DNA from: Eutreptiella sp. 'Long Island Sound 2002'
Taxonomy: Eukaryota; Protista; Euglenida
Direction: 5' to 3'
Length of the DNA: 64,000 nucleotides
Assembly: GCA_964036045.1 (NCBI GenBank)
Contig: OZ038378.1
Coordinates: 170,624,001-170,688,000 of the forward strand
In this document: piece by piece, positions 2,752 through 64,000 of the stretch
Numbering within the stretch: position 1 is the stretch's first letter
How the letters are laid out: every line of letters begins with the position of its first letter
Position numbers and translations under genes: made by a program
The notes under the pieces: generated by a model
Database searches by the model: none
What the model was told of the DNA's origin: nothing
Seen by the model: only the letters and a program-made list of their open reading frames with translations

Positions 2752-2771
2752 CACACACACACACACACACA

Positions 2772-3999
2772 TTGAGGAATTTGCGCAACGCACCCTCCCA
2801 CACGCTCCACAGGCAAAATTTAAGGGCACCACCCTTTCGCTGCAAGAGAGAGGCCGGGTCTTACGACTGGCAATGGCAAATGCGCAGCGCCTGGTCACCA
2901 AAGGCCATTTGCATCCGGCGCGTGTGGTCACACGCTGCAGCTCTTTAGTTCCTTTGGGGGGGCCGGCACTCTGCGGCCTGAACTGCCGCCCTTATTTCAC
3001 TTGCCGCAGTGCCATGAACATGCACGTTCAGCAGTTAGCGGCATACTGTGAGCGCACATGGGCCACCAAGGTTGGTCTCAACAGGATACACAAACTGCGC
3101 CCGCACACACACAGGCCACGCAGAACAGCGCAGGAAGTGGAGGAGCATCGGCTACAGCGTGCACTCCAGGGGAATCTGCAGTTGGGGCTGGCCCCGCCCT
3201 CGGAGCAGACCACTTTTGCCAAAGGGGGGGGGGGCTGCTCCTCCTTTGCAGCTGATTTCTTCCCTGTGATAGGGGATGGGAAGCTCCCACAGCGCCCCTA
3301 CACCGGGACACGCAGGCGCGCAAACACACACAGGGGGCCACCACCGGCGCCGCCGGCTGATCCGTCAAAGTGTGCCCAGCACTCTGCTGACGCATGCACG
3401 ACCTGCAAGAGATTTCGGCGCACAGCTGAAGCGTGCTGTGCGCTGGGACATCACGCTGATGACCACATAGCACGCAGACCGCAACTGCAACTGTGCCCAA
3501 TGCATGGCCTGCCACCGTGCCCGAGGTGCACACTCAAGCAAAGGGGAGTGCGCCACTGCTGTCAGCGGGGACACCATAAAGTGTGCACCCCAGTGCCTGC
3601 GCGCCGGAAACGCCCACTTGCTGCACATGCACAACTGCCCAACAAACGACCACGCCTGCAAGGGCCTGCACGTATCTCAACGGGTCTGCTGAGGTCCCCA
3701 CACCAACCCCCCACCCCTCCAGCCCCCAAGCGCAGGAGGCCGAAAACACCCCCCCCTCCGTCCCCACCTGCCCCAGTTCCACGGGGGCTGGAGGAGACCG
3801 TGGCCGAGGATGTCGCCCGCCCGCTTTTCGTGACGAGGCACGGGAGAGCAAACACTCTGGATACTTAGCCAATAAAATACAGAGGTTCTGATTCCGCAGA
3901 AGGGAGGGAAACAACGTCACAAAGAGGCCTCAGCAGACCTGAGCCAAATGGGGCGTCCAGCCCAACGCTGCACAAGGATCCACCTCTAAAAGTACAGAT
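2772..3999 (+). mobile_element. 5'-truncated LINE copy (subfamily D, copy 1): ORF2 C-terminal region plus 3' UTR
   Basis: Translation (EEFAQRTLP..LVPLGGPALCGLNCRPYF) aligns by eye with ORF 56613-57626 downstream of the RT. Near-identical to 47648-48807. Ends CTCTAAAAGTACAGAT followed by (CA)n. Confidence 0.85.
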
Positions 4000-24983: not shown

Positions 24984-24984
<1 letters not shown>

Positions 24985-25122
24985 TTCTGAGTGTCTATTT
25001 TTTTTCGAAAGGCGCCTAGCCTCAATGACACTATTTTCTGTTGTGGCCTGACGAGCTGTTTTGACAAGTGCCCTGTTTGCCTGCTATCGACAGTGGGTTC
25101 GGGTTTCTTGATCTCCTTCACA

Positions 25123-47575: not shown

Positions 47576-47602
<27 letters not shown>

Positions 47603-47606
47603 GCAC

Positions 47607-47647
<41 letters not shown>

Positions 47648-47650
<3 letters not shown>

Positions 47651-48807
47651 GAGAGAGGCCGGGTCTTACGACTGGCAATGGCAAATGCGCAGCGCCTGGT
47701 CACCAAAGGCCACTTGCATCCAGCGCGTGTGGTCACACGCTGCAGCTCTTTAGTTCCTTTGGGGGGGCCGGCACTCTGCGGCCTGAACTGCCGCCCCTAT
47801 TTCACCTGCCGCAGTGCCATGAACATGCACGTTCAGCAGTTAGCGGCATACTGTGAGCGCACGTGGGCCACCAAGGTTGGTCTCAACAGAATACACAAAC
47901 TGCGCCCGTACACACATAGGCCACGCAGAACAGCGCAGGAAGTGGAGGAGCATCGACTACAGCGTGCACTCCAGGGGAATCTGCAGTTGGGGCTGGCTCC
48001 GTCCTCGGAGCAGACCAATTTTGCCAAAGGGGGGGGGGGGGGCTGCTCCTCCTTTGCAGCTGATTTCTTCCCTGTGATAGGGGATGGGAAGCTCCCACAG
48101 CGCCCCTACACCGGGACACGCAGGCGCGCAAACACACACAGGGCGCCACCACCGGCGCCGCCGGCTGATCCGTCAAAGTGTGCCCAGCACTCTGCTGACG
48201 CATGCACGACCTGCAAGAGACTTCGGCGCACAGCTGAAGCATGCTGTGCGCTGGGGCATCACGCTGATGACCACATAGCACGCAGACCGCAACTGCAACT
48301 GTGCCCACTGCATGGCCTGCCACCGTGCCCGAGGTGCACACTCAAGCAAAGGGGAGTGCGCCACTGCTGTCAGCGGGGACACCATAAAGTGTGCACCCCA
48401 GTGCCTGCGCGCCGGAAGCGCCCACTTGCTGCACATGCACAACTGCCCCACAAACGACCACGCCTGCAAGGGCCTGCACGTATCTCTACGGGTCTGCTGA
48501 GGTCCCCACACCAACCCCCCACCCCTCCAGCCCCCAAACGCAGGAGGCCGAAAACACCCCCCCCTCCGTCCCCACCAGCCCCAGTTCCACGGGGGCTGGA
48601 GGAGACCGTGGCCGAGGATGTCGCCCGCCCGCTTTTCGTGACGAGGCACGGGAGAGCGAACACTTTGGATACCTAGCCAGCAAAATACAGAGGTTCTGAT
48701 TCCGCAGAAGGGAGGGAAACAACGTCACAAAGAGGCCTCAGCAGACCTGAGCCAAATGAGGCGTCCAGCCCAACGCTGCACAAGGGTCCACCTCTAAAAG
48801 TACAGAT
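47648..48807 (+). mobile_element. 5'-truncated LINE copy (subfamily D, copy 2)
   Basis: Near-identical to about 2845-3999, with a different 5' breakpoint and the same 3' end; (CA)n on both sides. Confidence 0.88.
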
Positions 48808-51305: not shown

Positions 51306-54300
51306 ATGCCAGAGCCCATTTCCTTAGACGCTGCCTGGCTAGTGGCATTGAGTGACCTCATCAAAGACGAAGTGGCCGCGGCAGTGCGGTCACTAGCGCC
51401 CAAGGTGCGGGAACGAGCCCCACCATTCGAGATCTGCGTTAGGAGCTCCAGGAGGCCAGAACATCCCGTCGAGATGGGGACTCGCCGTCCAGGCCTACTC
51501 CCTCCTCTCCCTCACCCTACTCTCCATCTGGGGTGCAGAAAGCCTCCTATGCGGCCGCATTGAAGTCAAGCCCCAAACCAGGGAAAAGCCACGTGGCAGT
51601 GCAGAGTATCCCACCACTCCTCGTTGGACAGATAGTGCACGATGCACACGCGATTGCAGTTCAGGCTGTGGACAAGCACACACAAACAGGCTCGGTCTCT
51701 GCTCTTATTCTTTCCACGGCTGGCTCTAGAAGGGATGTGTCAATCTCTAGGATTCTTGGATCGCTTGGTCGCAGCCGCGACAACCTGCGGGTCACCTCGT
51801 GCCACACACGGATCGTCGTCCTGACTCAGCGCTTCTCTGGGATGACTCAGGAGGTTGGTACCACTGTCAGCCCTTCAGGCCACATGCTTCTCGTGTAATG
51901 GGCACGCAGCCCCGGAGGGGGACGACGGGAAGGACCAGGAGCCGGAGCTGCTTCCGCACGACAAGGGGGCTGTGCGAGTCGTCTGCACGCTGGACCTAAC
52001 GGTACTCCGCGATGGCGGAAAGACCGCCAACAGAACGAAGTCGGTCATGTGGGCCAAGTCCACATGCTGGGATGTTACGTGCCCACCGCTGGAACCCAAA
52101 CTCCCCCCCCCCCCCCCATGGTGGTCGGGAAACGTGGGAGCAAGTTAGAGGTCACGATGGCCCTCCCCTACCCCTTCGTGCAACAGGTCCTGAAGCAGAG
52201 CGGGTACAAGGGGGAGTGTGGAATACAAGCTCTTTCTGAGCAGGGATCTCGATCTTGCAGAGCAAAAAGTGCATATGTGTTGGCTTAAGCTCCCGGAGGG
52301 CACCACGCGACCCTTCCCCTAGCAGCACCACAGGCTGAAAGATAGTCCATGGTTCGCCGGCATTCTTACCGGCGACAAGGAGAACCGCATCGGGGTCCGC
52401 GTGTGGGGTGGCCCCGTGCTACCGGAAGTCAGGCAGGAAATTGCACAATGTCCGGGTTTTTCTGCCCCCTCCAACCCCCCCAGGTGACCACTGCGCGCGT
52501 GTATGGGTACGGCCTGACCTTCGGCCTTGCCTTAGGGGACCAATAAGTGGCCCAACGAGAAGCCATCAAAGGTGATGAGCACCCGCCACCCTCAGAGGTC
52601 AGGGATGGTTTGTCCAGTCTACGATGTGGAGCTAACAGGAGTGCCAGCCGGCAGGGAGGGGTCCAAAGTGCCTGCCGCCGACACACGGCTTCGCGAGCGG
52701 TCATGGCAAAGGGTCGTCAGGGCGACGGTCAGGCAACAGTACCGAACAGTGGGGCGCAACGCCGTCCTGCCCGCGGTGACAGGGTGTCCCAAGCCAGAGG
52801 ACACCATGGCAGTGGATGTGGAGGCTGGCGACAGTGCCGACCCGGACGTACTGTAAACAGTGCACGGGCCCGCCTCCGCCTGCTGAGATGTGGGGACATT
52901 TGCCCCCCCCTCCCCCCCCCCCCCCAGGGGTGACCTTCGTAAATGCTAATGTCACTTCGCTGCGCGCACACTATGAGACATTGTTCGATTTTTCATCTGA
53001 TTTGTGGGCCTGCAAGAAACCCGCCTGACACAGGCGGGACAGCGGTGCATGCAACAGTTAGCCAAGCAGTCTAGCTGGGACTGTTTTTGGGGCTTCCCCC
53101 TCTCCTCCCCCACAAGAGGGATATGGGGAGCGCCACAGGGAGGGGTGGGACTCCTTTGCAGGAGGGGCTAGATTTGCAGCAAGGTAGATGCATCAGATGA
53201 TCCACTGCAACAGAAACTCTGGCACTCGGGCAAATGGCTCCATGTCATCGCCTGCTTAGGGGAGGGAAGAGAACATATTCCTATACAGGTGGTTTAGGGC
53301 ATCGCCGGAAACCAAGCTCTGAACCGTGAGTTGTGGGAGGCAGTCGTCTGCTACTCTTCGGGTCTGGGGAATGCAGGCCTCATTGTCCTGACTGACGCCA
53401 ACTTCAGTTTTGACAACTTCAATTCCATCCCCCGCCCCCCTGGTCGCGCTCGCGGACGGGTGGCTGATCGATATTGATCTGGCGCATGCACAACTGCACG
53501 ACACCCCCCTTGTCAGCGCATACACACGGGCGGGGCAGCACCACAACACGCATTGACGCCATGCTGGTGGATCTAGCACACACTGGTTCAGTCACGGCAG
53601 TGGAAGTGGTCCCGGAACACGGATTACCCAGTCACAATGCAGTTAGATACACACTCAACATAAATGTACCCGTGCATTGAGTGATGAAACTCCGCAAACC
53701 TCCCCCCTTCAGCCTACCGCCAAGGGACGACACAGGCCTAGAGGAAATCTGCACGGAACTTCTGCGCCCGCACATACCCCAATGGGACTCCTTGCTTGAT
53801 ACGGGGGGCCCAGTGGACAAGCTATGGGAATGTTGGACATGGCTCGCTAAGGAAACAAGCCTGGCCCTGAGCTATGACGGTCTCACCACGCACACAGCCA
53901 AACCCATCCCCTATGCCCCCTACGCCGTAGAGCGAGGACATGGCACCGATGACATGCTTATGGAAGCCACGCCGTGCCCCACAAAAACCACAAAATCAGG
54001 GGCACTACGCACCAAATTGCTGTCCAAAATCCACAGCGCACTGGGATCACCACGTCCAGTGATCCGCTGGGCGCGCAACCAACTTGGCACAGTTCAAGAC
54101 CGCCCGCAGACAGAAGGCACTACACAGCCCCACATTGCTGGGGCCCATGCCACAGCATGTTAGGTGCGACTGGGACGCGGCATGCCACCGCATGCGCAAG
54201 ATAGGGCGATTGGTCCGCAGTGACCTGTCTCTCCAGGAACTTCAGCACCTGGCCCCCGATCCACACCTACCAGTGCCGCGCGGACCCCCCCCCCCCCCTG

Positions 54301-57300
54301 AAAGACATCATGACCCTGCATGACTCACTGCAGTCTATGGGCAGAAAGCACGCGCGACCACTCGAATTAGAGCGCCTGCAACAGTGGCGCCGGTCCATGG
54401 GACAAGAGTGATTAGACTGGCCCAAGGATTTATATAAATGGATCAAGAATGACTACCAAGCACCCTTGGTCATGTTAAAGGACCCTGAGACAAGGGGGCC
54501 CACGGCCAATGTGGACTGCATGGATGAAATCTTGCATGAGTCCTGGGACAAGGTCATGCGCAAGTATGCAGACTCCCCCGAGCCAGGCCCGGATGTTTGT
54601 GTGCATAAGTATTGGAATTTCATTGAAAGCAATACAGACATGAACGTCACCCCCCTCACGGGCGCAAGACCGCGCAAGCGTTTTCGAAAAATGGGGGTAC
54701 ACACAGCCACAGGTCTGGACGGCTGGTGTGTGGTGGACCTGCTATGCCTGCCCAACGCACTGTTTGACATGCTGGCTCAATTACTGACGCACATTGAGTC
54801 CACAGGGCTGTGGCCCCACATGCTTGCCCGCGGCTTCGTTTCTTTAATTCCAAAAGGGGAGGGCATGCTCCCTATGCAACAACGCCCACTCTAGATGCTT
54901 TCACAACTATACAGACTGTGGGCCGGCGTCAGGCTGGAGGAATGCATGATTTGGCAAGAAAAATGGGTATGCCCCCACGCCTATGGGTTTCGGAAAAAGA
55001 GAGGGGCTACCGATGCAGCGGCCCTTATCGCCCTTCTCATCGAGCTCCACACCGTCATGCGTGCCGCGCTCAAGGTTTTTGGGTTGGATTACGTTAAGGG
55101 TTTCGACGCAATACCCAACAAGTAGTGCTCCGCGTCGCCCTCGAGCAGGGCATGCACCCAGGCACACTCAGAGTGTTGTCCGGAATGTACACACAACTGA
55201 CCCACTGCTTTAAAATAATGGGATGTCTCTGCTCCTTTTTCGCCGCAACAAATGGCATCTTGCAAGGGTGTCCGCTGAGTGTCATCTTCATTAATCTCAT
55301 GACAAGTATCTGGAAGAAAATCCTAGATGCACAGTCACAAGCCATACACACATCCTCCACACGGCTACCGCCGGGGGGGAAACCTGGGGAAGCGTTAGAC
55401 TTCATTCTAACAGCGCTCGGCTATGCCGATGACACATACGGCGTGGCCGTAGGACAACACACAGTCGAGCCCCTGTCGGAGTGCACACATGAATGGCTTG
55501 AGGCAACAGGGCAAGATGTCAACCCAAAGAAATCAATCAATTTTATCATCCCCGACAGTGATCAGGAAATCTAGATGCGTGGCGTATCTTTTCCCGAAGA
55601 AACCGAGTTTTGCTCATTAGGGGCAGGCGTGCGCACCACAGACAGCGTAGCCTCGGGCCCACTCATCCTAAAATGTATAGGCAAAACATCCGCTCTGCTG
55701 GACCGGATACACGGCGTGCAAGGAGACTTTGACGACAAGTGTAAGGTGGTTGCCACCATGGTCAATGCCACAGGCCTCCATGCGTCTGAAATTGTGGCCA
55801 TCAGCCAAAAAGACATCAGGCCTTTCGAAATATGGACCCTAAAAGCCATCTGGGGAGCCTCCAGACCAAGCAGAGCGAAGGAAACAATTTTTTGCCTCAT
55901 GTGCCAGGGACACAGAATTGCCCCTCCCTGCTGGTTCCTTACGGCTGCGCCGTCTCGCTGGCAAGGCTTTGCAAACCACGCGGCCCGGCCATGATCACGG
56001 CACATGCCGTGTGAGAAAAGAGCCCCCTCACACGCAAGTCGGGACCATTTGGTCGGGCGTTGAAAGCCCTGCTTGACTGGGGATTCCGACCGCTCTCGGG
56101 TTGGTGGGAATGGCAAGTGCTGGGCACTACAGGTGCCCTCCAACTGAGAGGTGCTTTTAAGCCGGTCAAGCACAACATCAGAGAACAGTTGCGGTCGCAG
56201 CAGATCACACAGCTCATAGCCAGGCGACCACGTTAGTTTGCAGGCATGCACTATCACACAAACCGGAGGCTGGTCTGTGCCAGCATCGCCTCTTTCCAGT
56301 CTGAATAGGAACGCTCGCTACTGCGCACACTACCGGCATGGGTCTGTGGACAGCGGTCAGGGGCATGATCACCTCCCAGTGCTGCCCATATTGCCAACAG
56401 GTAGATGAAGCCGAACAGCACATTCTCTGGGAATGCACAGAATGGGCGGCAGCCAGGGACCTACACATCGCCAACGTCCGCGCCTTGGCAGCGAAAGTCC
56501 CAGATCTACCACCGTTTGACACATGGCCCCCGTGCCTGAAAATCAGCGGTCTCCTACCTGAAATGAACAGGCAGGTGCAACAGCATGACCTTCCTTTCAG
56601 GCCCTCCATGCCATGTTTGTAGCCATACTTGCGGCACGCAAGCTGCGGGACCAACAGGCACCCAAACTCTTCCCCACAGTGCTCCCGCAGGTGCGCAGCG
56701 CATATCCCTACCATCAGCTGGTGGCCCCCATGCCCCCCCCCCCCCCCGCGCGCCTGGTATGCCCACACAACCCCACCGCACGCACTTGGCCATGGGAAAA
56801 GCCCGTTTTGGCAGACCTACTGGCTTGGCTGCGAGCGCTGCAATGGACGGATGACACAAATACAGTGTCCTTCATCGAGCTAGCGCTCGATTTTGAAGAG
56901 TCCGCGGCACGCACCCTGCCGGCGGCACCCCAGGCTAAGTTTCAGGGACACACACTACCACTGCAAGAGAGGGCTAGGGTTTTGCGCCTGGCGCTATGCA
57001 CACTTCAGAGACTGGTCAAATCGGGCTCTCTCCAGCCAGCCAAAGTCATAACATGCGCCACGTCGTTAGTACCGCTGGGCGGGCCGCCTGTGGCGGGCCT
57101 CAATCGCCGTCCATACTTTGCATGCTGTGACGCTATGCACAAGCACATCCAACTCTTGGCTTCCTACTGCGAGTGCACATGGACGCTGCGCACGCACATG
57201 CGCTCTAATGCACACAGACCGTACGAGTATCGTCGCAAAAAAACGGAGCAAGAAGTCGAGGAGGCGCGCCTGCAGCGTGCACTAACGGGCAGCTTGAACA

Positions 57301-58182
57301 CTGGGCTTATGCCCTCATCTTCCCTCTGCGCCAAGGGGGGGGCGGGCGCGACACATTTTGCGGGGGATTTTTACCCGGTTATGGGGGGAGGCAAAGCCAC
57401 CCAAGCCCCGTACACAGTCACGCGCAGGCGAGCACCGCAACCGACGGCCCCGGCAACGTGTATCGCGGTCCCCTCTCCCATGGTGTCAGCGTATGCATGC
57501 CCCGCCCACAGACTACCGGCATGCGTAACATGTAAACGGCTCCGCCTGTCGGCGGCTGCGTGCTGCGCCAAAGGCCACCACGCTCCAGGGTATGTAGACT
57601 GCAGACCAGTATCCAAGGTTTGCTAGACGCACGGGCTGCCGCTGTGCCCGCACTGCACCCTTATGTAGCGGGGGGTACGGCACTGCCGCCAATGAGGACA
57701 TCACAAGGTTAAAACCCCGCACAAAGGTCAAGGCAAAAGGACAGCGCCAGCCCCGGCAGGCTCCAACAAACGACCCCGGCTGTAGTCCGCAGTCCCAGCA
57801 CATTCGCGAATGCATCCACGCCCACCACACTTACCACCCACACCGTCAACCCCCAAGCGACGGAGACCCAAATTCCCGATCCCCCCCTCCCCTCCAGCCC
57901 CGCGGCCGCGGGGGATGCAGGTGGATGATGACGACACGGCAGTGGTGAGGACCCTGTTTTTCGCGGGCCACGGGCGCGCGTCATCGGAAGTTACTTGAGC
58001 CCGCTACACCACAGAGGTTCTGACTCCATGGAAAGATGCAAACGCGAGTATATGCACAGCCCCGCCCAGGTGCCGGGCTAAATATACCGGTTGCACTACC
58101 GCCACATATGAGTCTCCCTCATTAATAGTACTTGCAAGAGCGGCCAGGACATTAAAAGCCTTCAACCCTCGTTAATAGTACA
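51306..58182 (+). mobile_element. Near full-length degraded non-LTR retrotransposon (family A): ORF1 plus APE-RT-zinc finger ORF2
   Basis: ORF1-like region 51306-~52290 (KASYAAALKS). APE-like NANVTSL, TDANF, RIDAML and LPSHNAV. RT motifs ATGLDGW, LIPKG, YGFRKKRG, LDYVKGFD, LQGCPLS and YADD (55422-55433). CCHC-like CPYCQQVDEAEQHILWEC. Many stops and frameshifts. Confidence 0.92.
52930..57998 (+). pseudogene. LINE ORF2 (APE endonuclease, reverse transcriptase, zinc finger, Cys/His C-terminal domain), disrupted
   Basis: Collinear motifs across ORFs 53256-57998; in-frame TAG at 54892-54894 and a frameshift near 55123. Confidence 0.9.
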
Positions 58183-59590
58183 GGGTGGGATAGGGCAGGC
58201 CACAAGCAGGCTCTAACCGGCTAACCCCTAACCCTCCCGTCGCAAGAGCGGCTAGGACATTAAAAGCCTTCAACCCTCGTTAATAGTACACCCAGGGTGC
58301 TGGGGGGGGGGGGGTCAACGGTGTCTGCCGGTTCAGGGGGAGGGGTTGCAGCAGCAACTAGGCACTATGCCCTTCGGAGGGCCGGAGCGCGCACCGGCTC
58401 CCTCGTCCGGGGGAGGGTGTGGGGGTACGGCAGAGCCGGGAGTAGCAGTGCTGCCGCGCGGGGGCACGCAGGAGCCGCAGCGCGGCCACAGGAGGGCCTC
58501 AGAGGAGGGCACATAACCCGAGACGGATGTCCTTCCGCCGCGCCGCGACACACCGGCGGGCCAGGGGAGGGATAGGGCATGCCACAAGCAGGCTCTAACC
58601 CGCTAACCCCTAACCCTCCCGTCGCAAGAGCGGCCAGGACATTAAAAGGCTTCAACCCTCGTTAATAGTACACCCCTAACCCTCCCGTCGCAAGAGCGGC
58701 CAGGACATTAAAAGCCTTCAAAACCCTCGTTAATAGTACACTCCCGTCGCAAGAGCGGCCAGGACATTAAAAGCCTTCAACCCTCGTTAATAGTACAGAG
58801 CGGCCAGGACATAAATAGCCATCAACCCTCGTTAATAGTACACCCCTAACCCTCCCGTCGCAAGAACGGCAAGGACATCAAAAGCCTTCAAAACCGTCGT
58901 TAATAGTACACTCCCGTCGCAAGAGCGGCTAGGACATTAAAAGCCATCAACCCTCGTTAATAGTACATAACCCTCCCGTCGCAAGAGCGGCTAGGACATT
59001 AAAAGCCATCAACCCTCGTTAATAGTACAGGGAGAGTCCCTGCCCCCCTCCCCCCCAACAGAAGAGGGCGCAGCGGGCGGGGGGAAAAAGGGTGGGGCAG
59101 CCGCGGCGCCCCATGCAGACCCTGTGCGATGAGCACAGGGCCCTGGCATGCAAGTCATGCAGGGGGCACGGGGGGGGTGCGGCATTGCTGCAGCCGCCAT
59201 CACGAGGGGCAGCCCAGGGTGTTGGGGGGAGGACAACGGTGCCTGCCGGTGCAGAGGGGGGGGCTACAGCAACAAGCGGGCGTGTTGCCCTCCGGAGGGC
59301 CGGCGCTCGTGCCAGGTCCCGTGACCGGGGGGGAGGGGGGAGCCGCAGCAGGGCAGGGGACGGCGGTGTCGCCCCGAGGCGGCACACAGGGCCCGGATCA
59401 GGGCCACGGGAGGGCCTCCGAGGAGGGCACATAGCCACAGGACGGCGTCCTTCCGCCGCGCCGCGACAATCCGGGGGGCTGGGGGTGGGATAGGGCAGGC
59501 TTCAGGCAGGCTCTAACCCGCTAACCCCTAACCCTCCCGTCGCAAGAGCAGCTAGGACATTAAAAGCCATCAACCCTCGTTAATAGTACA
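58132..59590 (+). repeat. Head-to-tail array of ten variably 5'-truncated units sharing the 3' end ..CGTTAATAGTACA
   Basis: Unit ends at 58182, 58290, 58672, 58740, 58797, 58842, 58910, 58967, 59029 and 59590. The longest unit encodes the LINE Cys/His domain (LCDEHRALACKSC..VRHCCSRHH). Confidence 0.92.
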
Positions 59591-61300
59591 GGGTGTGGCG
59601 CGTGCTGGGGCAGCGCGAACAGCTACACCTGGTCCTGGGGGATTGGGGCGATGTTTGCCACCGGGTGCGGCAGTCGCAGAGATACACCGCACTGGCGGCA
59701 CTGGAGCGGCGCCGACCGGCCACCTTTGGGGGGCTAGGGGCGGAGGTGTGCAGGCCCGCCTGGCCCAGGGCATGACAGTCGCCAGATCGGAGACGGAGCG
59801 CTCGCTACTGCGGGCACTGCAAGCCGGGGCGACGTGGACCGGAGCGCGGGTCAGCAAGCATCGAATTTCGGATTTGGCGGCCTGCCCCTACTGCGGGGGC
59901 CCCCCGGAGACGGAGGTCCATCTCCTATGGGACTACCCGCAGTGGCATACGCAGCGGGCCGCCTGGCTCCCGCTGGTGCAGGCCGAGGCGGCGCTTTTGC
60001 CGGCGCTGGTCCTCCCGTCGGCGTGGCCGGTATGCCTACAGGCGACGGGCCTGTTGCCGGCGGCGTTGGTGCGGCCGGAGGAGGCGGATCAGGCGGGGCG
60101 GCTCATGTACCGCCTCTATGGCATGTATCTGGCGGTGCTATCGGCGCGCATGGGAGCGGAAGTCGCGGCACGTCGAGACGCGGGCGCGGGCCCCTCGGTC
60201 TTTGCGATCGCGCGCAGACGCCCTCCCGATGCGCGCCGGGGCTACCCATGGGGGCAACTGGGCGCGGGCCCACACCCCCCGGCGCCACCAGCGGCGCCGC
60301 TGGCGTTGCGCGCCGGCCCACCGCCAGGGTGGCCGTGGGAGGCATCCTTTGCGATGGCGCTCCTGCAGTGGGCTAGACGACTGCGGTGCCTGCCGGGGCA
60401 GGGCCATGTGACGTACGTGGAGCTGGCCCTGGACTTCGAGGCCCACGCGGCACGGGCACTCCCGGCCCCCAGCGACCACCGGCTGCGGGGGGTCACCTTG
60501 CCTCTACGCACCATGGGCCAAGTGCTGAAAATGGCCCTGGATGCGTTGCAGCCGCATCTGCAGGCAGGGGACCTCCTGCAGGGCAAGGAGATGTGGATGG
60601 CGAAGTCTCTCCTGCCGCTGGGGGCTTCAGGTGTGTGGGGTGGTCGGCGCCCCTGCTGTTTGCCTGCCCCGCAGCCATGCTGTTTCAAATGAGGCAGCTG
60701 GAGGCGCATTGCCGCGAGCTATGGACGCGGCGCTTGGCGCGGCCGGGAAGGGGAAGGCAAGATATGTTCTTGCTGGATTACCTGCCGCCGGCGGGACCAG
60801 GGCGGCAGCCACTGCGGCCATTTCAGCGATTGCCGCGCCGGCTGGTGCAGCGCGACCGGCACGGGGCGGGCGACGGGAGCGCGGGGCGCGCGGCGGCGCC
60901 GCCGCAGGTGGCCCCGTGCGCGAGGCACCGGGCCCCGCCTTGTGCTGCCTGCGCGCAGCGCGGAGCGGAGCACTGCTGCCGGCGGGTGCACGAAGGGCAC
61001 CGCATGGATGCGGCGCAAGCGCGCGTGGCGGCCCGAGCGTTGCGGGCGTTGGTGCAGCCCGCACCGCCCGCCGGGGCCGGGCCGGCGGTGGCTTCACAGC
61101 CCGTGCGTGATCCGCCGCGCGGCCGCAAGCGCTCCCGCTCGCGGTCCTCATCACCGGAGCTAGCGACGCGGCGAGCGCACCCGGCGTTGCGCGAGTGCGC
61201 GCGCCACCCGGGGGAACCTTCCGACCCCCCCCCTCGCGTCTCGATGGGGGGGGCACACAGCCTGAGCGGCTCGGGTATGTTGGATGCGCGGGGGGAGCTC
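59591..61300 (+). mobile_element. 5'-truncated GC-rich LINE (family B), ORF2 C-terminal part
   Basis: ERSLLRALQAG, CPYCGGPPETEVHLLW, WPWE and VTYVELALDFEAHAARALP are homologous to family A 56300-57100. The 3' boundary is unclear. Confidence 0.85.
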
Positions 61301-62521
61301 CGGCGGCCCTTGCCGCTCCCCCCCCCCCCCCCCCCTCACTCCCCCCGGGGAGAGCGCCAGGGCAGGGGGGGGCAGCAGGGGGGCGGCCGCAGGTGCCACA
61401 GGCGCCGGCAGGTAGCCCGGGCGGCCGCAATATGGGGGGAGGGGGCGCCCTGTCCCCCTCCCCCCCCTCTACCTCAAGGGAGCGGTCACTCGGGTGGTGT
61501 GCCCTCCGGGCCCCCCCGTTTACGTGGACAGTTGCACCGCCGCCCGGGCCTCAGGTCCGGGAGACCCCAGGGCAGGGAAGCGCTCAGCGAGCCCTGGGGC
61601 CCCTCCAACCGCCCGCCCCGTCGCCGTGGGAGGCAGGTCCAGCCTAGAGCAGCACCACCCGTGCCAGCGCAATCAAGGAGTGCGGACCGCCCCCAGTCGT
61701 GTGAGGAGCTTGGCCACCCCTTGCCGTTGGCAGTAGTGGGCGACCAGCGGCATGTCTGTAGACTTGGAGGTGGCGTCTCCTGACCGGCAACTCCCTCGGT
61801 GGGCTCAGCGTCAGACTCCCCTAGCCTCCCCGCCGGGGCCTGAAGCACCAGGCGACACACTACCCCACGCGCGCGTACAGCCCCCCACGCACGCCACCAC
61901 ACACCCAGCGACCAGGGCACGCTGGTATCGTGCCCGGGTTGGTCTCCGACGACACGCGGGACACACCCCGCACTAGCGGATCCCAGCACGGTATCCCGTG
62001 CGTCAATAGACCAGACCATCCTCCTCTTGGCGCCGCACACCACCTGATCACCATGGAGCAGGGTCACTAGAACGTGCGGCCGCCAAGCACCAGCCCCTCA
62101 GCGACAAGGAAGGCTGCGGACGACGGTCGCATCGCCGCAGCGCACACCTCGGGCATCGATACCTGCGACATTCCATATGCCTCCTCCCCCCTGCCCTGCG
62201 CCTGCCCCTGCCCTAGCGCCTGCCCCTACTCCCTGGCCCCTGTGCCCCTCGGCCCTTACTTCAGCCTGTGACCTCGCCCCAGCCAGGCCCCTATGGCCGA
62301 CTGCCCGCCCACGATCGCCCATAGTTCACCACGTGACAGCTAGCGAGTGCCCGGTGTTGCCCATAAGGCCCGAACAAACGACCTGCCTGCCCCCGTCGCG
62401 CACATTGCCCGCTTGCCTGGTACCTGGTGCCCAGGCCCTGTGGAGCCCTGCTGCCCGCGCCATGTGCTCCGCCCCCTGCCACTTCCCCCCTACTCGCGCC
62501 TCTCTCAGGACCTGATCCACC

Positions 62522-63808
62522 ATGGCCCCTAAGCACGCCTTTGCCGCAAAGTCCCCTGCCCAGCGCGCTGCCGATATTCGCCCGGGCGAAGCGTGGCCAG
62601 CCACTGCCGTGGGCTGGAACGAGGCCGCCAACAAGCTGCAGCTCAGCGTGGTCCACCACGAGTCGAACACACCCGTGGAGGCCTTTCACCCGGACGACAA
62701 CATGTTGGGTGCCCTGTGCCTCTTCTGGGCCGTCGCAGTGGAGACTCTGCCGCCCCTGGATATCGGCACACTTCAGCAGCGTGACGTCAACTTCCACTGG
62801 GGCACGTATCAGGCGGCCATGACCGACCTCCTTGCGTACCTCGCTGCGGCCCCCTCTGATGCGCTCCACCAACTACAGCAAGCAGCGGCCGCGCATGTAT
62901 CCCCATTTGGCGACACCCTTCGGGCCTCATCCCCAGACCAATTCCTCATGCTCCTGGCTGGCGACGAGTCCCCCAAGCGACCCCTCGACCGTGTACCGCT
63001 CGTACACTGGCTGTTGACCTGGCAAGCGGCCCACCGCAAAAAAGCCCTTCGCTGCCAAATTCTACCCCAGGCAGAAACCCGCCTGCCGGCCCCCTGTCCG
63101 CTATCGCTCCAGCAATGGAATGCTGAGATCTCCCGCCACACACCGATCCTGCAGTACCCTGGGGTCCTGTCCCGCTTGGCCCTCAAGAGAGCCGAACTCT
63201 CTGGACCCCCGAGCTCTGAACCACTCTGGAAGAGGATGCTCACGCAGCCCAGCACCCTGGCCTCCGCCACCGACTTCACGTCCGAGATCGAGCGGCTGGC
63301 CTCCACCCCCGACGGTCACGCGGAGCATGTGGCCCAGTCCATCCGGGTCCTCTGCACCGACACGGCCATCCCCGACAGCGCCCTTACCACGCTCCGCTCA
63401 GTGAAGAGCGGGCGAACACTGGCCTCTGCCGTCAAGACGGTCTGGTATGGCTGTCCAGCGAACCTCCGCCCCACCCTGCACGCCAACCTCCTCGACCTGA
63501 TCGCCACAGTCGAGGACATCCATGGTGCCTCCGCCATTGAGTCCCACCGCCTCACAGCCCTTCAATCCCTTGACCCCCTCGTGGACGCGGCTGCCACCCA
63601 CCCCGGCCTGGTGTGGTCGTCCGCAGCGGCCACCCTCCTCGCCGCCCGCCCCCCAGTGGTGCCCCCGCAAGCGACGGACCTGCTACTAGCTGTCCGGGAT
63701 TCCGTCTCGTTCCGTGTAGCAGTCTCGGTAGCGGTCCAGGGCACCACCCGTCCGCAACAGCTGGACCAGCTGGTATCAGAGGTCCGGACCGCCCTGCAGC
63801 CCTCGTGA
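62522..63808 (+). CDS. Uninterrupted 428-aa ORF of unknown function, possibly ORF1/gag-like of the next element
   Basis: ATG-to-TGA frame with natural-looking Ala/Leu-rich composition, no introns and no motif I recognise; lies next to the retroelement cluster. Confidence 0.55.
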   Translation: MAPKHAFAAKSPAQRAADIRPGEAWPATAVGWNEAANKLQLSVVHHESNTPVEAFHPDDNMLGALCLFWAVAVETLPPLDIGTLQQRDVNFHWGTYQAAMTDLLAYLAAAPSDALHQLQQAAAAHVSPFGDTLRASSPDQFLMLLAGDESPKRPLDRVPLVHWLLTWQAAHRKKALRCQILPQAETRLPAPCPLSLQQWNAEISRHTPILQYPGVLSRLALKRAELSGPPSSEPLWKRMLTQPSTLASATDFTSEIERLASTPDGHAEHVAQSIRVLCTDTAIPDSALTTLRSVKSGRTLASAVKTVWYGCPANLRPTLHANLLDLIATVEDIHGASAIESHRLTALQSLDPLVDAAATHPGLVWSSAAATLLAARPPVVPPQATDLLLAVRDSVSFRVAVSVAVQGTTRPQQLDQLVSEVRTALQPS

Positions 63809-64000
63809 GGCCCGGCGGCGGCGTACGCCTGGTTTGAGCGCCGCACCTCTGGACCCTTCCCGCCTTTGCCTCCCACGAGCACCCCGACCCCCCTCCCCCC
63901 CGTGCCTCTCCCGTTGAGCGCCTTCCCCTGCCCGCTCACCGCCCTCCCCCCCGCTGCCCCCCCCCACAGTCTCCACAGGGTTGCTGCCCCCCTCCCTCGT

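Follow-up and report, generated by a model that had tools for sequence, protein, structure and literature searches.

Trains of retroelement 3′ ends in the euglenid Eutreptiella sp. 'Long Island Sound 2002' are probably built by serial insertions of a long interspersed nuclear element (LINE) at one site that is regenerated by each insertion. Here, we describe such a train in a 64,000-nt stretch of contig OZ038378.1 (hereafter the window; C1:170624001-170688000 of a 2.28-Gb genome). Ten units (grouped as family D2) follow one another in the window, all with one common 3′ end and each truncated at a different point on its 5′ side, and neither poly(A) nor a spacer was found between the ten. They belong to a family of non-LTR (long terminal repeat) retrotransposons that we call family B, and are stacked directly behind a degraded copy of a related family, family A. 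The inserting element would carry an endonuclease of the APE (apurinic/apyrimidinic endonuclease) type, and its two cuts at the target would be staggered by 17 bp. As judged from sequence comparisons between loci, the invariant 17-nt terminus of the units is itself a target-site duplication (TSD). An earlier reading of the window by a model (the original prediction) had noted the absence of TSDs; this was a misreading, as is seen from terminal variants that are shared within loci and from TSDs at three sites that lack the 17-mer.

The 17-nt terminus across the genome

The consensus 17-mer, CCCTCGTTAATAGTACA, has 585 exact copies genome-wide, versus 1 match of the reversed control pattern. These copies lie mostly in same-strand clusters, many of them spaced 31–150 nt apart, and trains are present on all large contigs; another 217 copies belong to the TAGCAC variant of the 17-mer. 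We mapped 111 termini at 54 loci and used two unselected samples besides, namely neighbour pairs on contigs C1–C3 and a genome-wide tally of linkers and termini. At the 54 loci, a B unit directly follows 23 of 25 family-A termini. Another B unit comes next at 44 of the 86 B termini, a 0–9-nt linker and a (CA)n tract at 26, and an interrupted CA tract at about five more, and the majority of the mapped B units directly adjoin a preceding terminus. Junctions between units are mostly free of filler (58/65), with two-base microhomology enriched among the filler-free ones (12 of 58). Family-B units range from 31 nt to 7.3 kb and have a common 3′ end; 27 of the 43 units placed directly after a terminus by a strict test are no longer than 150 nt. 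In the genome as a whole, a linker and at least (CA)5 come after roughly a quarter of the 350 exact B termini and after only five family-A termini.

Family-B units carry subfamily markers, by which we distinguish a T-type (GCCTTC), a GCCATC-type and a AAATAGCCATC type. Rare variants of the 17-mer cut across these types: they are common to all units of a train, even where the bodies belong to family A, T-type B and GCCATC-type B. The variants shared in this way are TAGCAC (five trains), AAAAGTAC, ACCTCG, TTGCTAATAG, CATGAATAG, CCCTCA and TCCTCG. Adjacent termini carry the same non-consensus variant in 15 of 62 pairs, where 1.4 are expected (0 of 20000 permutations), and with TAGCAC left out, 8 such pairs stand against 0.5 expected (again 0 of 20000). 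The pairs with a common variant join heterologous units (family A and B, or T-type and GCCATC-type), and the markers 21–25 nt from the end are not shared. Among unselected same-strand neighbours at most 1 kb apart on C1–C3, 38 pairs are consensus–consensus, 8 are variant–variant and 1 is mixed, versus 18.4 mixed pairs expected. In a tree of 35 B bodies, from which the last 20 nt were left out, TAGCAC termini do not group together (6 changes for 8 rows), being present in no fewer than three B clades and with both B marker backgrounds. One train has two AAAAGTAC units that belong to different clades, and one of these two clades (99% support in the Shimodaira–Hasegawa-like approximate likelihood ratio test, SH-aLRT) also includes a unit with the usual ending.

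B copies at three sites that lack the 17-mer show what is duplicated. At L055, a full-length B copy lies between two copies of an 18-nt TSD, CAACCTACCCAGAATGAA, of which the downstream one abuts (CA)18. At L056, a 17-nt TSD, CCCTC(T/C)TGACATCCACA, is followed by TACATG(CA)n, and at L057 an 18-nt TSD, CCCTGGGCAGCAGTGGGG, by GTGA(CA)n. In all three copies, the B-derived part stops at ...ATCAAC(C), precisely where the 17-mer would be expected to start (the B body without the 17-mer ends in ...GCCATCAA), and the downstream TSD copy lies 0–6 nt from the (CA)n tract. The first 4–6 nt of these TSDs correspond to ...CAACCCT in the B RNA, and two of the three insertion junctions are also present in this genome. 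Because the B sequence stops before the position of the 17-mer, the last 17–18 nt of a B unit are contributed by the target rather than by the RNA. With the 17-mer of each junction being the TSD, trains seem to have neither a TSD nor a spacer.

At family-A ends, the 17-mer is followed by a short linker (mostly NNG) and then by a (CA)n tract. The linker is tied to the terminal variant: TAGCAC occurs with GAG, CCTCGTAAATAGTACA with GAT, and the consensus with GTG or GCGCG. This linkage indicates that 17-mer, linker and (CA)n travel as one block, which would most simply be the 3′ end of family-A-like founders. The same linkage rules out another idea, that the 3-nt linker is a fresh untemplated addition in each event. 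Genome-wide, B ends with the diverged terminus CCTCGTAAATAGTACA are nearly always followed by GAT(CA)n, which points to CCTCGTAAATAGTACA termini as further founder lineages. The (CA)n may have been either the founders' target or their own tail. No CA repeat was found upstream of the trains or of the L055–L057 copies, (CA)n being present downstream only, and no TSD surrounds the whole train in the nine cases searched. A third context of the 17-mer also exists, in which ...GGCCCTTG precedes it (59 of 61 exact copies preceded by G/C) and which can head trains (e.g. L045:2444-2471).

The families follow a fixed order within trains. All 16 A–B pairs of the unselected sample have family A on the upstream side. 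Of the pairs that combine the T-type with the GCCATC-type, 15 have the T-type upstream and 2 show the reverse order, and the last unit is of the GCCATC-type in 28 of 32 trains. Identity to other genomic copies is 85–93% for family A, 88–94% for the T-type and 94–97% for the GCCATC-type. The order within trains would thus fit an order of age, from family A through the older B types to the youngest B at the (CA)n. It fits accretion over time at the terminus adjacent to (CA)n, whereas equal use of all termini does not fit and birth in one event fits poorly.

One-event birth was nevertheless among the two explanations offered by the original prediction, in the form of serial template jumping from RNA to RNA, a behaviour established for the R2 reverse transcriptase (RT). 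Synthesis would start at the (CA)n, leave its template early and jump to the 3′ end of the next A or B RNA. The very short units and clean junctions speak for such jumping, and the order with B at the (CA)n and family A last could reflect a preference for the element's own RNA, followed by jumps. However, acceptor RNAs would bring their own termini, yet the rare variants are common to heterologous units and scattered over the B tree. Furthermore, B copies at 17-mer-free sites lack any 17-mer and have a TSD in its place, families of clearly unlike copy divergence (and thus unlike age) are combined in a fixed order, and the endonuclease is of the APE type, not the R2 type. On these grounds, we consider template jumping unlikely.

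The chances are similarly slim for a 17-mer that is borne on the RNA and is no TSD, with the uniformity of trains resulting from co-evolving pairs of A and B subfamilies that were active together (e.g. an A2 lineage and a B lineage, both ending in TAGCAC). The abundance of TAGCAC, and its tie to a distinct family-A subtype and to one linker, GAG, are what such pairs would produce. Set against this are the several B clades and both marker backgrounds on which TAGCAC is found, the six further train-private variants that extend across heterologous units, and the TSDs at the three 17-mer-free sites, which put the B-derived end before the 17-mer.

Families A and B and the train in the window

Families A and B are two related non-LTR retrotransposon families, both of which encode an APE endonuclease, an RT and a CCHC knuckle. 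They have the same domain order, and at their 3′ ends only the last 17 nt in common. The references used here are single natural copies, not a consensus. For family B, these include L055, a full-length copy of 7287 nt with a natural intact open reading frame (ORF; L055:5001-11177), which is the locus of a database protein of 2058 aa (P0001). P0001 is 90% identical to the family-B ORF and has an Exo_endo_phos domain (residues 327-536) and an RVT_1 domain (residues 940-1211). Its start (residues 15-29) contains a 2A-like NPGP motif (DVEPNPGP at 22-29), a motif known from the ORF start of some trypanosomatid LINEs. At L032, a 1195-aa family-B ORF has RVT_1 and the CCHC knuckle. The best solved relatives of the family-B RT are L1 ORF2p, and the nearest named relatives of P0001 are Diplonema LINEs (26–30% identity). 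Searches of Pfam and the protein atlas found nothing in the region after the CCHC motif except a weak zf-RVT match, and domain searches of family B and P0001 gave no match to RNase H. Family B shows the hallmarks of a LINE (RT, N-terminal APE, a fixed 3′ end with variable 5′ truncation, and TSDs). No published description of these euglenid families was found in the literature.

One reading of the coding capacity was discarded. Family B had seemed to lack an endonuclease when the 4.65-kb copies at L032, L035 and L038 were read as full length, which is refuted by P0001 and L055: many B copies are 5′-truncated about 4.65 kb from the 3′ end, a truncation hot spot, and so lack the APE. In family A, short pieces gave no Pfam match to the APE, which a tblastn search with P0001 did reach. 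This search aligned residues 328-1764 to positions 52977-57191 of the window at 33–45% identity (the family-A copy), where RVT_1 is found at 55098-55571 and a weak zf-RVT match at 56305-56619. The last 600 nt of this copy are 85–93% identical to other genomic copies. Elsewhere in the window, C-terminal LINE fragments related to P0001 residues 1665-1851 lie at 2771-3577 and at 47654-48385, the latter directly after a (CA)n tract (47580-47649).

The family-A copy terminates in CCCTCATTAATAGTAC (58116-58131), and the train follows. TTAATAGTACA has 10 exact matches in the window, all on the + strand and spanning 58172-59590, each ending at the last nucleotide of a unit (Table 1), and shuffled sequence has 0 matches. 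These ten ends and the unit lengths reproduce exactly what was originally described. Unit 3 is 79% identical to unit 10 and 88–94% identical to about 40 genomic copies of its own type, and unit 10 comprises nearly the entire family-B 3′ untranslated region (UTR), with 94–97% identity to many genomic copies. The sequence after unit 10 had been taken for a separate partner element, 'LINE B', and the array accordingly for a junction of two separate LINEs. This proved wrong, as 'LINE B' is an eleventh, longer unit of the units' own family. Beyond the window it continues at L031:6261-7092, after which come a 44-nt unit 12 and GTG(CA)n, so that the complete local train runs from family A through 12 B units to GTG(CA)n. 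The terminal marker of units 11 and 12 is of the AAATAGCCATC type.

Table 1. Features of the train and its surroundings (window positions)
Feature	Position	Strand	Remarks
Family-A LINE, degraded, head of the train	~52977..58132	+	APE, RT and CCHC (zf-RVT-like) regions
Terminal 17-mer of the family-A copy, CCCTCATTAATAGTACT	58116..58132	+	2 positions off the consensus CCCTCGTTAATAGTACA
Unit 1, 51 nt	58132..58182	+	family B, T-type (GCCTTC marker)
Unit 2, 108 nt	58183..58290	+	T-type
Unit 3, 382 nt	58291..58672	+	T-type
Unit 4, 68 nt	58673..58740	+	T-type, rare AA insertion
Unit 5, 57 nt	58741..58797	+	T-type
Unit 6, 45 nt	58798..58842	+	AAATAGCCATC-type
Unit 7, 68 nt	58843..58910	+	T-type, AA insertion as in unit 4
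Unit 8, 57 nt	58911..58967	+	GCCATC-type
Unit 9, 62 nt	58968..59029	+	GCCATC-type
Unit 10, 561 nt	59030..59590	+	GCCATC-type
Unit 11, first part ('LINE B')	59591..61475	+	5′-truncated family B; starts in the ORF, at P0001 residue ~1384
Left 15-bp TSD copy (CCCCCCCTCTACCTC) of a foreign ~8.8-kb insertion	61461..61475	+	right copy at L031:6261-6275
Start of the ~8.8-kb inserted element	61476..64000	+	not a train member

The original prediction also held that units 4–5 recur as units 7–8, and one half of this stands. Units 4 and 7 are identical at 64 of 68 positions and have the rare AA insertion in common, and they may be a local duplicate. Units 5 and 8 match at 55 of 57 positions, and their mismatches are exactly the two subfamily-marker positions; unit 6 and the end of unit 3 likewise disagree at marker positions. 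Given these marker differences, units 6 and 8, at a minimum, seem to have inserted independently, with start points that recur. It is very unlikely that the train as a whole arose by local DNA amplification, i.e. by unequal crossing-over or replication slippage with satellite-like growth. Tandem Repeats Finder (TRF) reports a 170-nt period in the array (2 copies, 94% identity), and the AA insertion of units 4 and 7 is in keeping with amplification, but the units combine a common 3′ end with ten different start points, they carry three sets of subfamily markers, and the same architecture with other unit lengths is found at dozens of loci. Amplification would account for at most one duplication in this train.

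Hardly credible is an assembly artefact, or a fixed multi-unit 3′ UTR of intact elements: no long read crosses the array, the short Logan unitigs of four runs include none that bridges a junction with 31 nt on both sides, and no RNA run contains the stretch, but the units differ in sequence and so do not represent one identical repeat that was collapsed or expanded, a single segment terminates each of the long and full-length copies (L032, L033, L036, L038 and L055), and the unit composition differs between trains at other loci.

An Rfam search of positions 57500-60000 matched no family, and the predicted RNA fold of the last 150 nt is moderately better than that of shuffled sequences (z −2.4). 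Telomere-like motifs of the CCCTAA type (CTAACCCGCTAACCCCTAACCC) are present in every B 3′ UTR, about 55–80 nt from the end (in the window at 59500-59530).

A model for the growth of trains

Serial insertion at a regenerating site could proceed as follows. Family B would integrate directly upstream of family-A-type (CA)n tracts, where a first cut would open the TG strand at the 17-mer's 5′ edge (^CCCT...). The nicked end would pair with the B RNA at ...CAACCCT and prime reverse transcription, which would usually abort within 150 nt, most reverse transcripts being very short (31–150 nt). A second cut, in the CA strand, would fall 17–18 nt downstream, right after ...TACA. Repair would then duplicate the 17-mer, giving the old element, the 17-mer, a new 5′-truncated B unit, the 17-mer again, the linker and the (CA)n. 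Each event would thereby regenerate the site, and the 17-mer copy beside the (CA)n would be preferred for the next one. Regeneration and this preference together would result in a head-to-tail, spacerless pile-up with the oldest unit upstream and the youngest at the (CA)n. The second explanation of the original prediction, an endonuclease that re-targets the element's own terminus, is supported in a sharper form: insertion would occur at the terminus beside (CA)n, with a 17-bp stagger, and would duplicate this terminus as the TSD.

Several points weigh against serial insertion as set out here. Both the nick sites and the 3′ end of the RNA are deduced solely from DNA products, namely finished insertions, and the linkage of variant and linker leaves undecided by which route the founders integrated. 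The 17-mer-free insertion sites examined number three, and most of the 54 loci were chosen by family-B homology. In the window itself, all 17-mers are of the consensus type except for private changes in the family-A copy and unit 7; with termini this uniform, the decisive evidence of variant sharing comes from other loci. Private 17-mer variants in several trains require later mutation to be explained, and units 6 and 7 of the window's train violate the age order. Finally, about 14 of 79 B units have neither an upstream terminus nor a TSD, although some of these may be interrupted copies.

A broader reading, which we hold to be evenly poised between right and wrong, would make family B a 'tail-homing' LINE that measures its stagger of 17–18 bp starting at the 5′ edge of (CA)n, with ...CCCT as the priming site. 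Family A would offer its last 17 nt as a self-regenerating landing pad, internal arrays would grow one-way like those of telomeric retrotransposons, and the 17-mer would spread among unrelated families as a re-copied TSD and not by descent. A retroelement 3′ terminus that seems conserved across families can then be a TSD re-copied at each insertion, which calls for caution in repeat annotation and in inferring what an RT recognizes. Family B would also be a concrete case of a LINE that combines recognition of a simple repeat, a fixed cut stagger and a short pairing between primer and RNA. The natural intact 2058-aa ORF at L055 and a defined substrate of 17-mer, linker and (CA)n make it a testable system. 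Such insertions would represent one route from dispersed elements to tandem arrays, and would help to account for the same-strand retroelement stacks and CA-linked repeats that fill this large, poorly described euglenid genome.

A few junctions at other loci deviate from the usual form. At L012:1179-1193 and L049:2293-2308, a family-A end is succeeded by a partial re-duplication of 14–15 nt that takes in no more than the final 11 nt of the terminus (TTAATAGTA.), perhaps the trace of an aborted event in which the nick fell within the 17-mer. At L052 (minus strand), an inverted B 3′ end directly follows the family-A terminus (2326), which resembles twin priming. Two sequences (CGCTCTTTTTCTGG... 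and CCTGCTTTGTTTGG...) are each found directly after B termini at two loci (L037 and L038, after 9500; L036:299 and L045:2608) and may be the 5′ ends of other full-length elements.

Related retroelements and neighbouring features

The euglenid trains are a variant form of known LINE behaviour in a little-studied genome. In Drosophila, R1 and other non-LTR elements that insert repeatedly into a single site form tandem ('tail-to-internal') arrays whose junctions contain the TSD (McGurk and Barbash, bioRxiv 10.1101/158386). The likeness extends to an intact 3′ end that is joined to a 5′-truncated next copy, a TSD in the junction and distinct truncation points. Unlike in Drosophila, what is duplicated in the euglenid trains is the terminal 17 nt of the resident element itself, beside (CA)n, and the site regenerates, giving trains of up to 12 units at many loci and of mixed families. 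As the element's own terminus is the target and is restored each time, the euglenid junctions look spacerless.

During L1 and Alu insertion, the nicked target end pairs with the 3′ region of the RNA, and landing occurs preferentially in the tails of older elements. The 'snap-velcro' priming model of L1 and the insertion into poly(A) tails of resident elements (PMC4014453, PMC3649969) are together with the double-insertion tandem model (10.1101/158386) the closest known frames. Common to both systems are an APE-type LINE, pairing between target and RNA, the targeting of older tails and TSDs of similar length. In contrast to L1 and Alu, the euglenid element has no poly(A), its pairing at ...CAACCCT would lie 12–17 nt inside the RNA 3′ end, and the site would be set by the neighbouring (CA)n.

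Integration tied to a simple repeat is also a property of microsatellite LINEs, such as Mino and Waldo (R1 clade, AC and ACAY repeats), Kibi and Koshi (Tx1 group) and Dong/R4. According to PMC4640811, many target-specific LINEs use microsatellites. Compared by insertion site, the trains share this tie, here to (CA)n. They are unlike Mino/Waldo, Kibi/Koshi and Dong/R4 in that the (CA)n lies on the 3′ side only and insertion occurs 0–6 nt upstream of the tract, not inside it.

Head-to-tail arrays of HeT-A/TART are found at Drosophila telomeres, and nested Zepp arrays in Chlorella; tandems at telomeres are covered by 10.1101/158386 as well. These also grow directionally, by 5′-truncated units added at one end. 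Unlike the HeT-A/TART arrays, the window's train is internal (the window lies at 170.6 Mb in a contig of 201 Mb, whose end is ~30 Mb away), and its integration would depend on an endonuclease, give a TSD from two staggered cuts and proceed without poly(A). Template jumping as in R2 could in principle yield spacerless chimeric cDNAs, but the euglenid enzyme is of the APE type and the termini are inherited from the locus. Domain searches found no R2-type restriction-like endonuclease after the CCHC motif (a weak zf-RVT match only), although no fold search was made. An R2-type element would be expected to take each unit's 3′ end from its own RNA, whereas the terminal variants go with the locus instead of the B lineage. 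Within the Euglenozoa, ingi/L1Tc-like LINEs have an N-terminal 2A-like peptide, APE, RT, RNase H and a C-terminal zinc finger. P0001 and family B have the 2A-like motif, APE, RT and CCHC as well, without a match to RNase H.

Besides the train, the window contains part of a foreign element of ~8.8 kb inserted into unit 11 (61461-64000 and L031:1-6275), which terminates in ...CCCAACCCAACCTAA. At L022 and L005, B units start within a few nucleotides of the same C-rich spot as this insertion, which is maybe a hot spot. At 24984-25007, between two (GT)n tracts, the window exactly matches what we take to be the Euglena spliced leader. The minus strand of L005 (C5:55388678-55392236) has the spliced-leader reverse complement, followed by a G-run that opens a 381-nt T-type unit.

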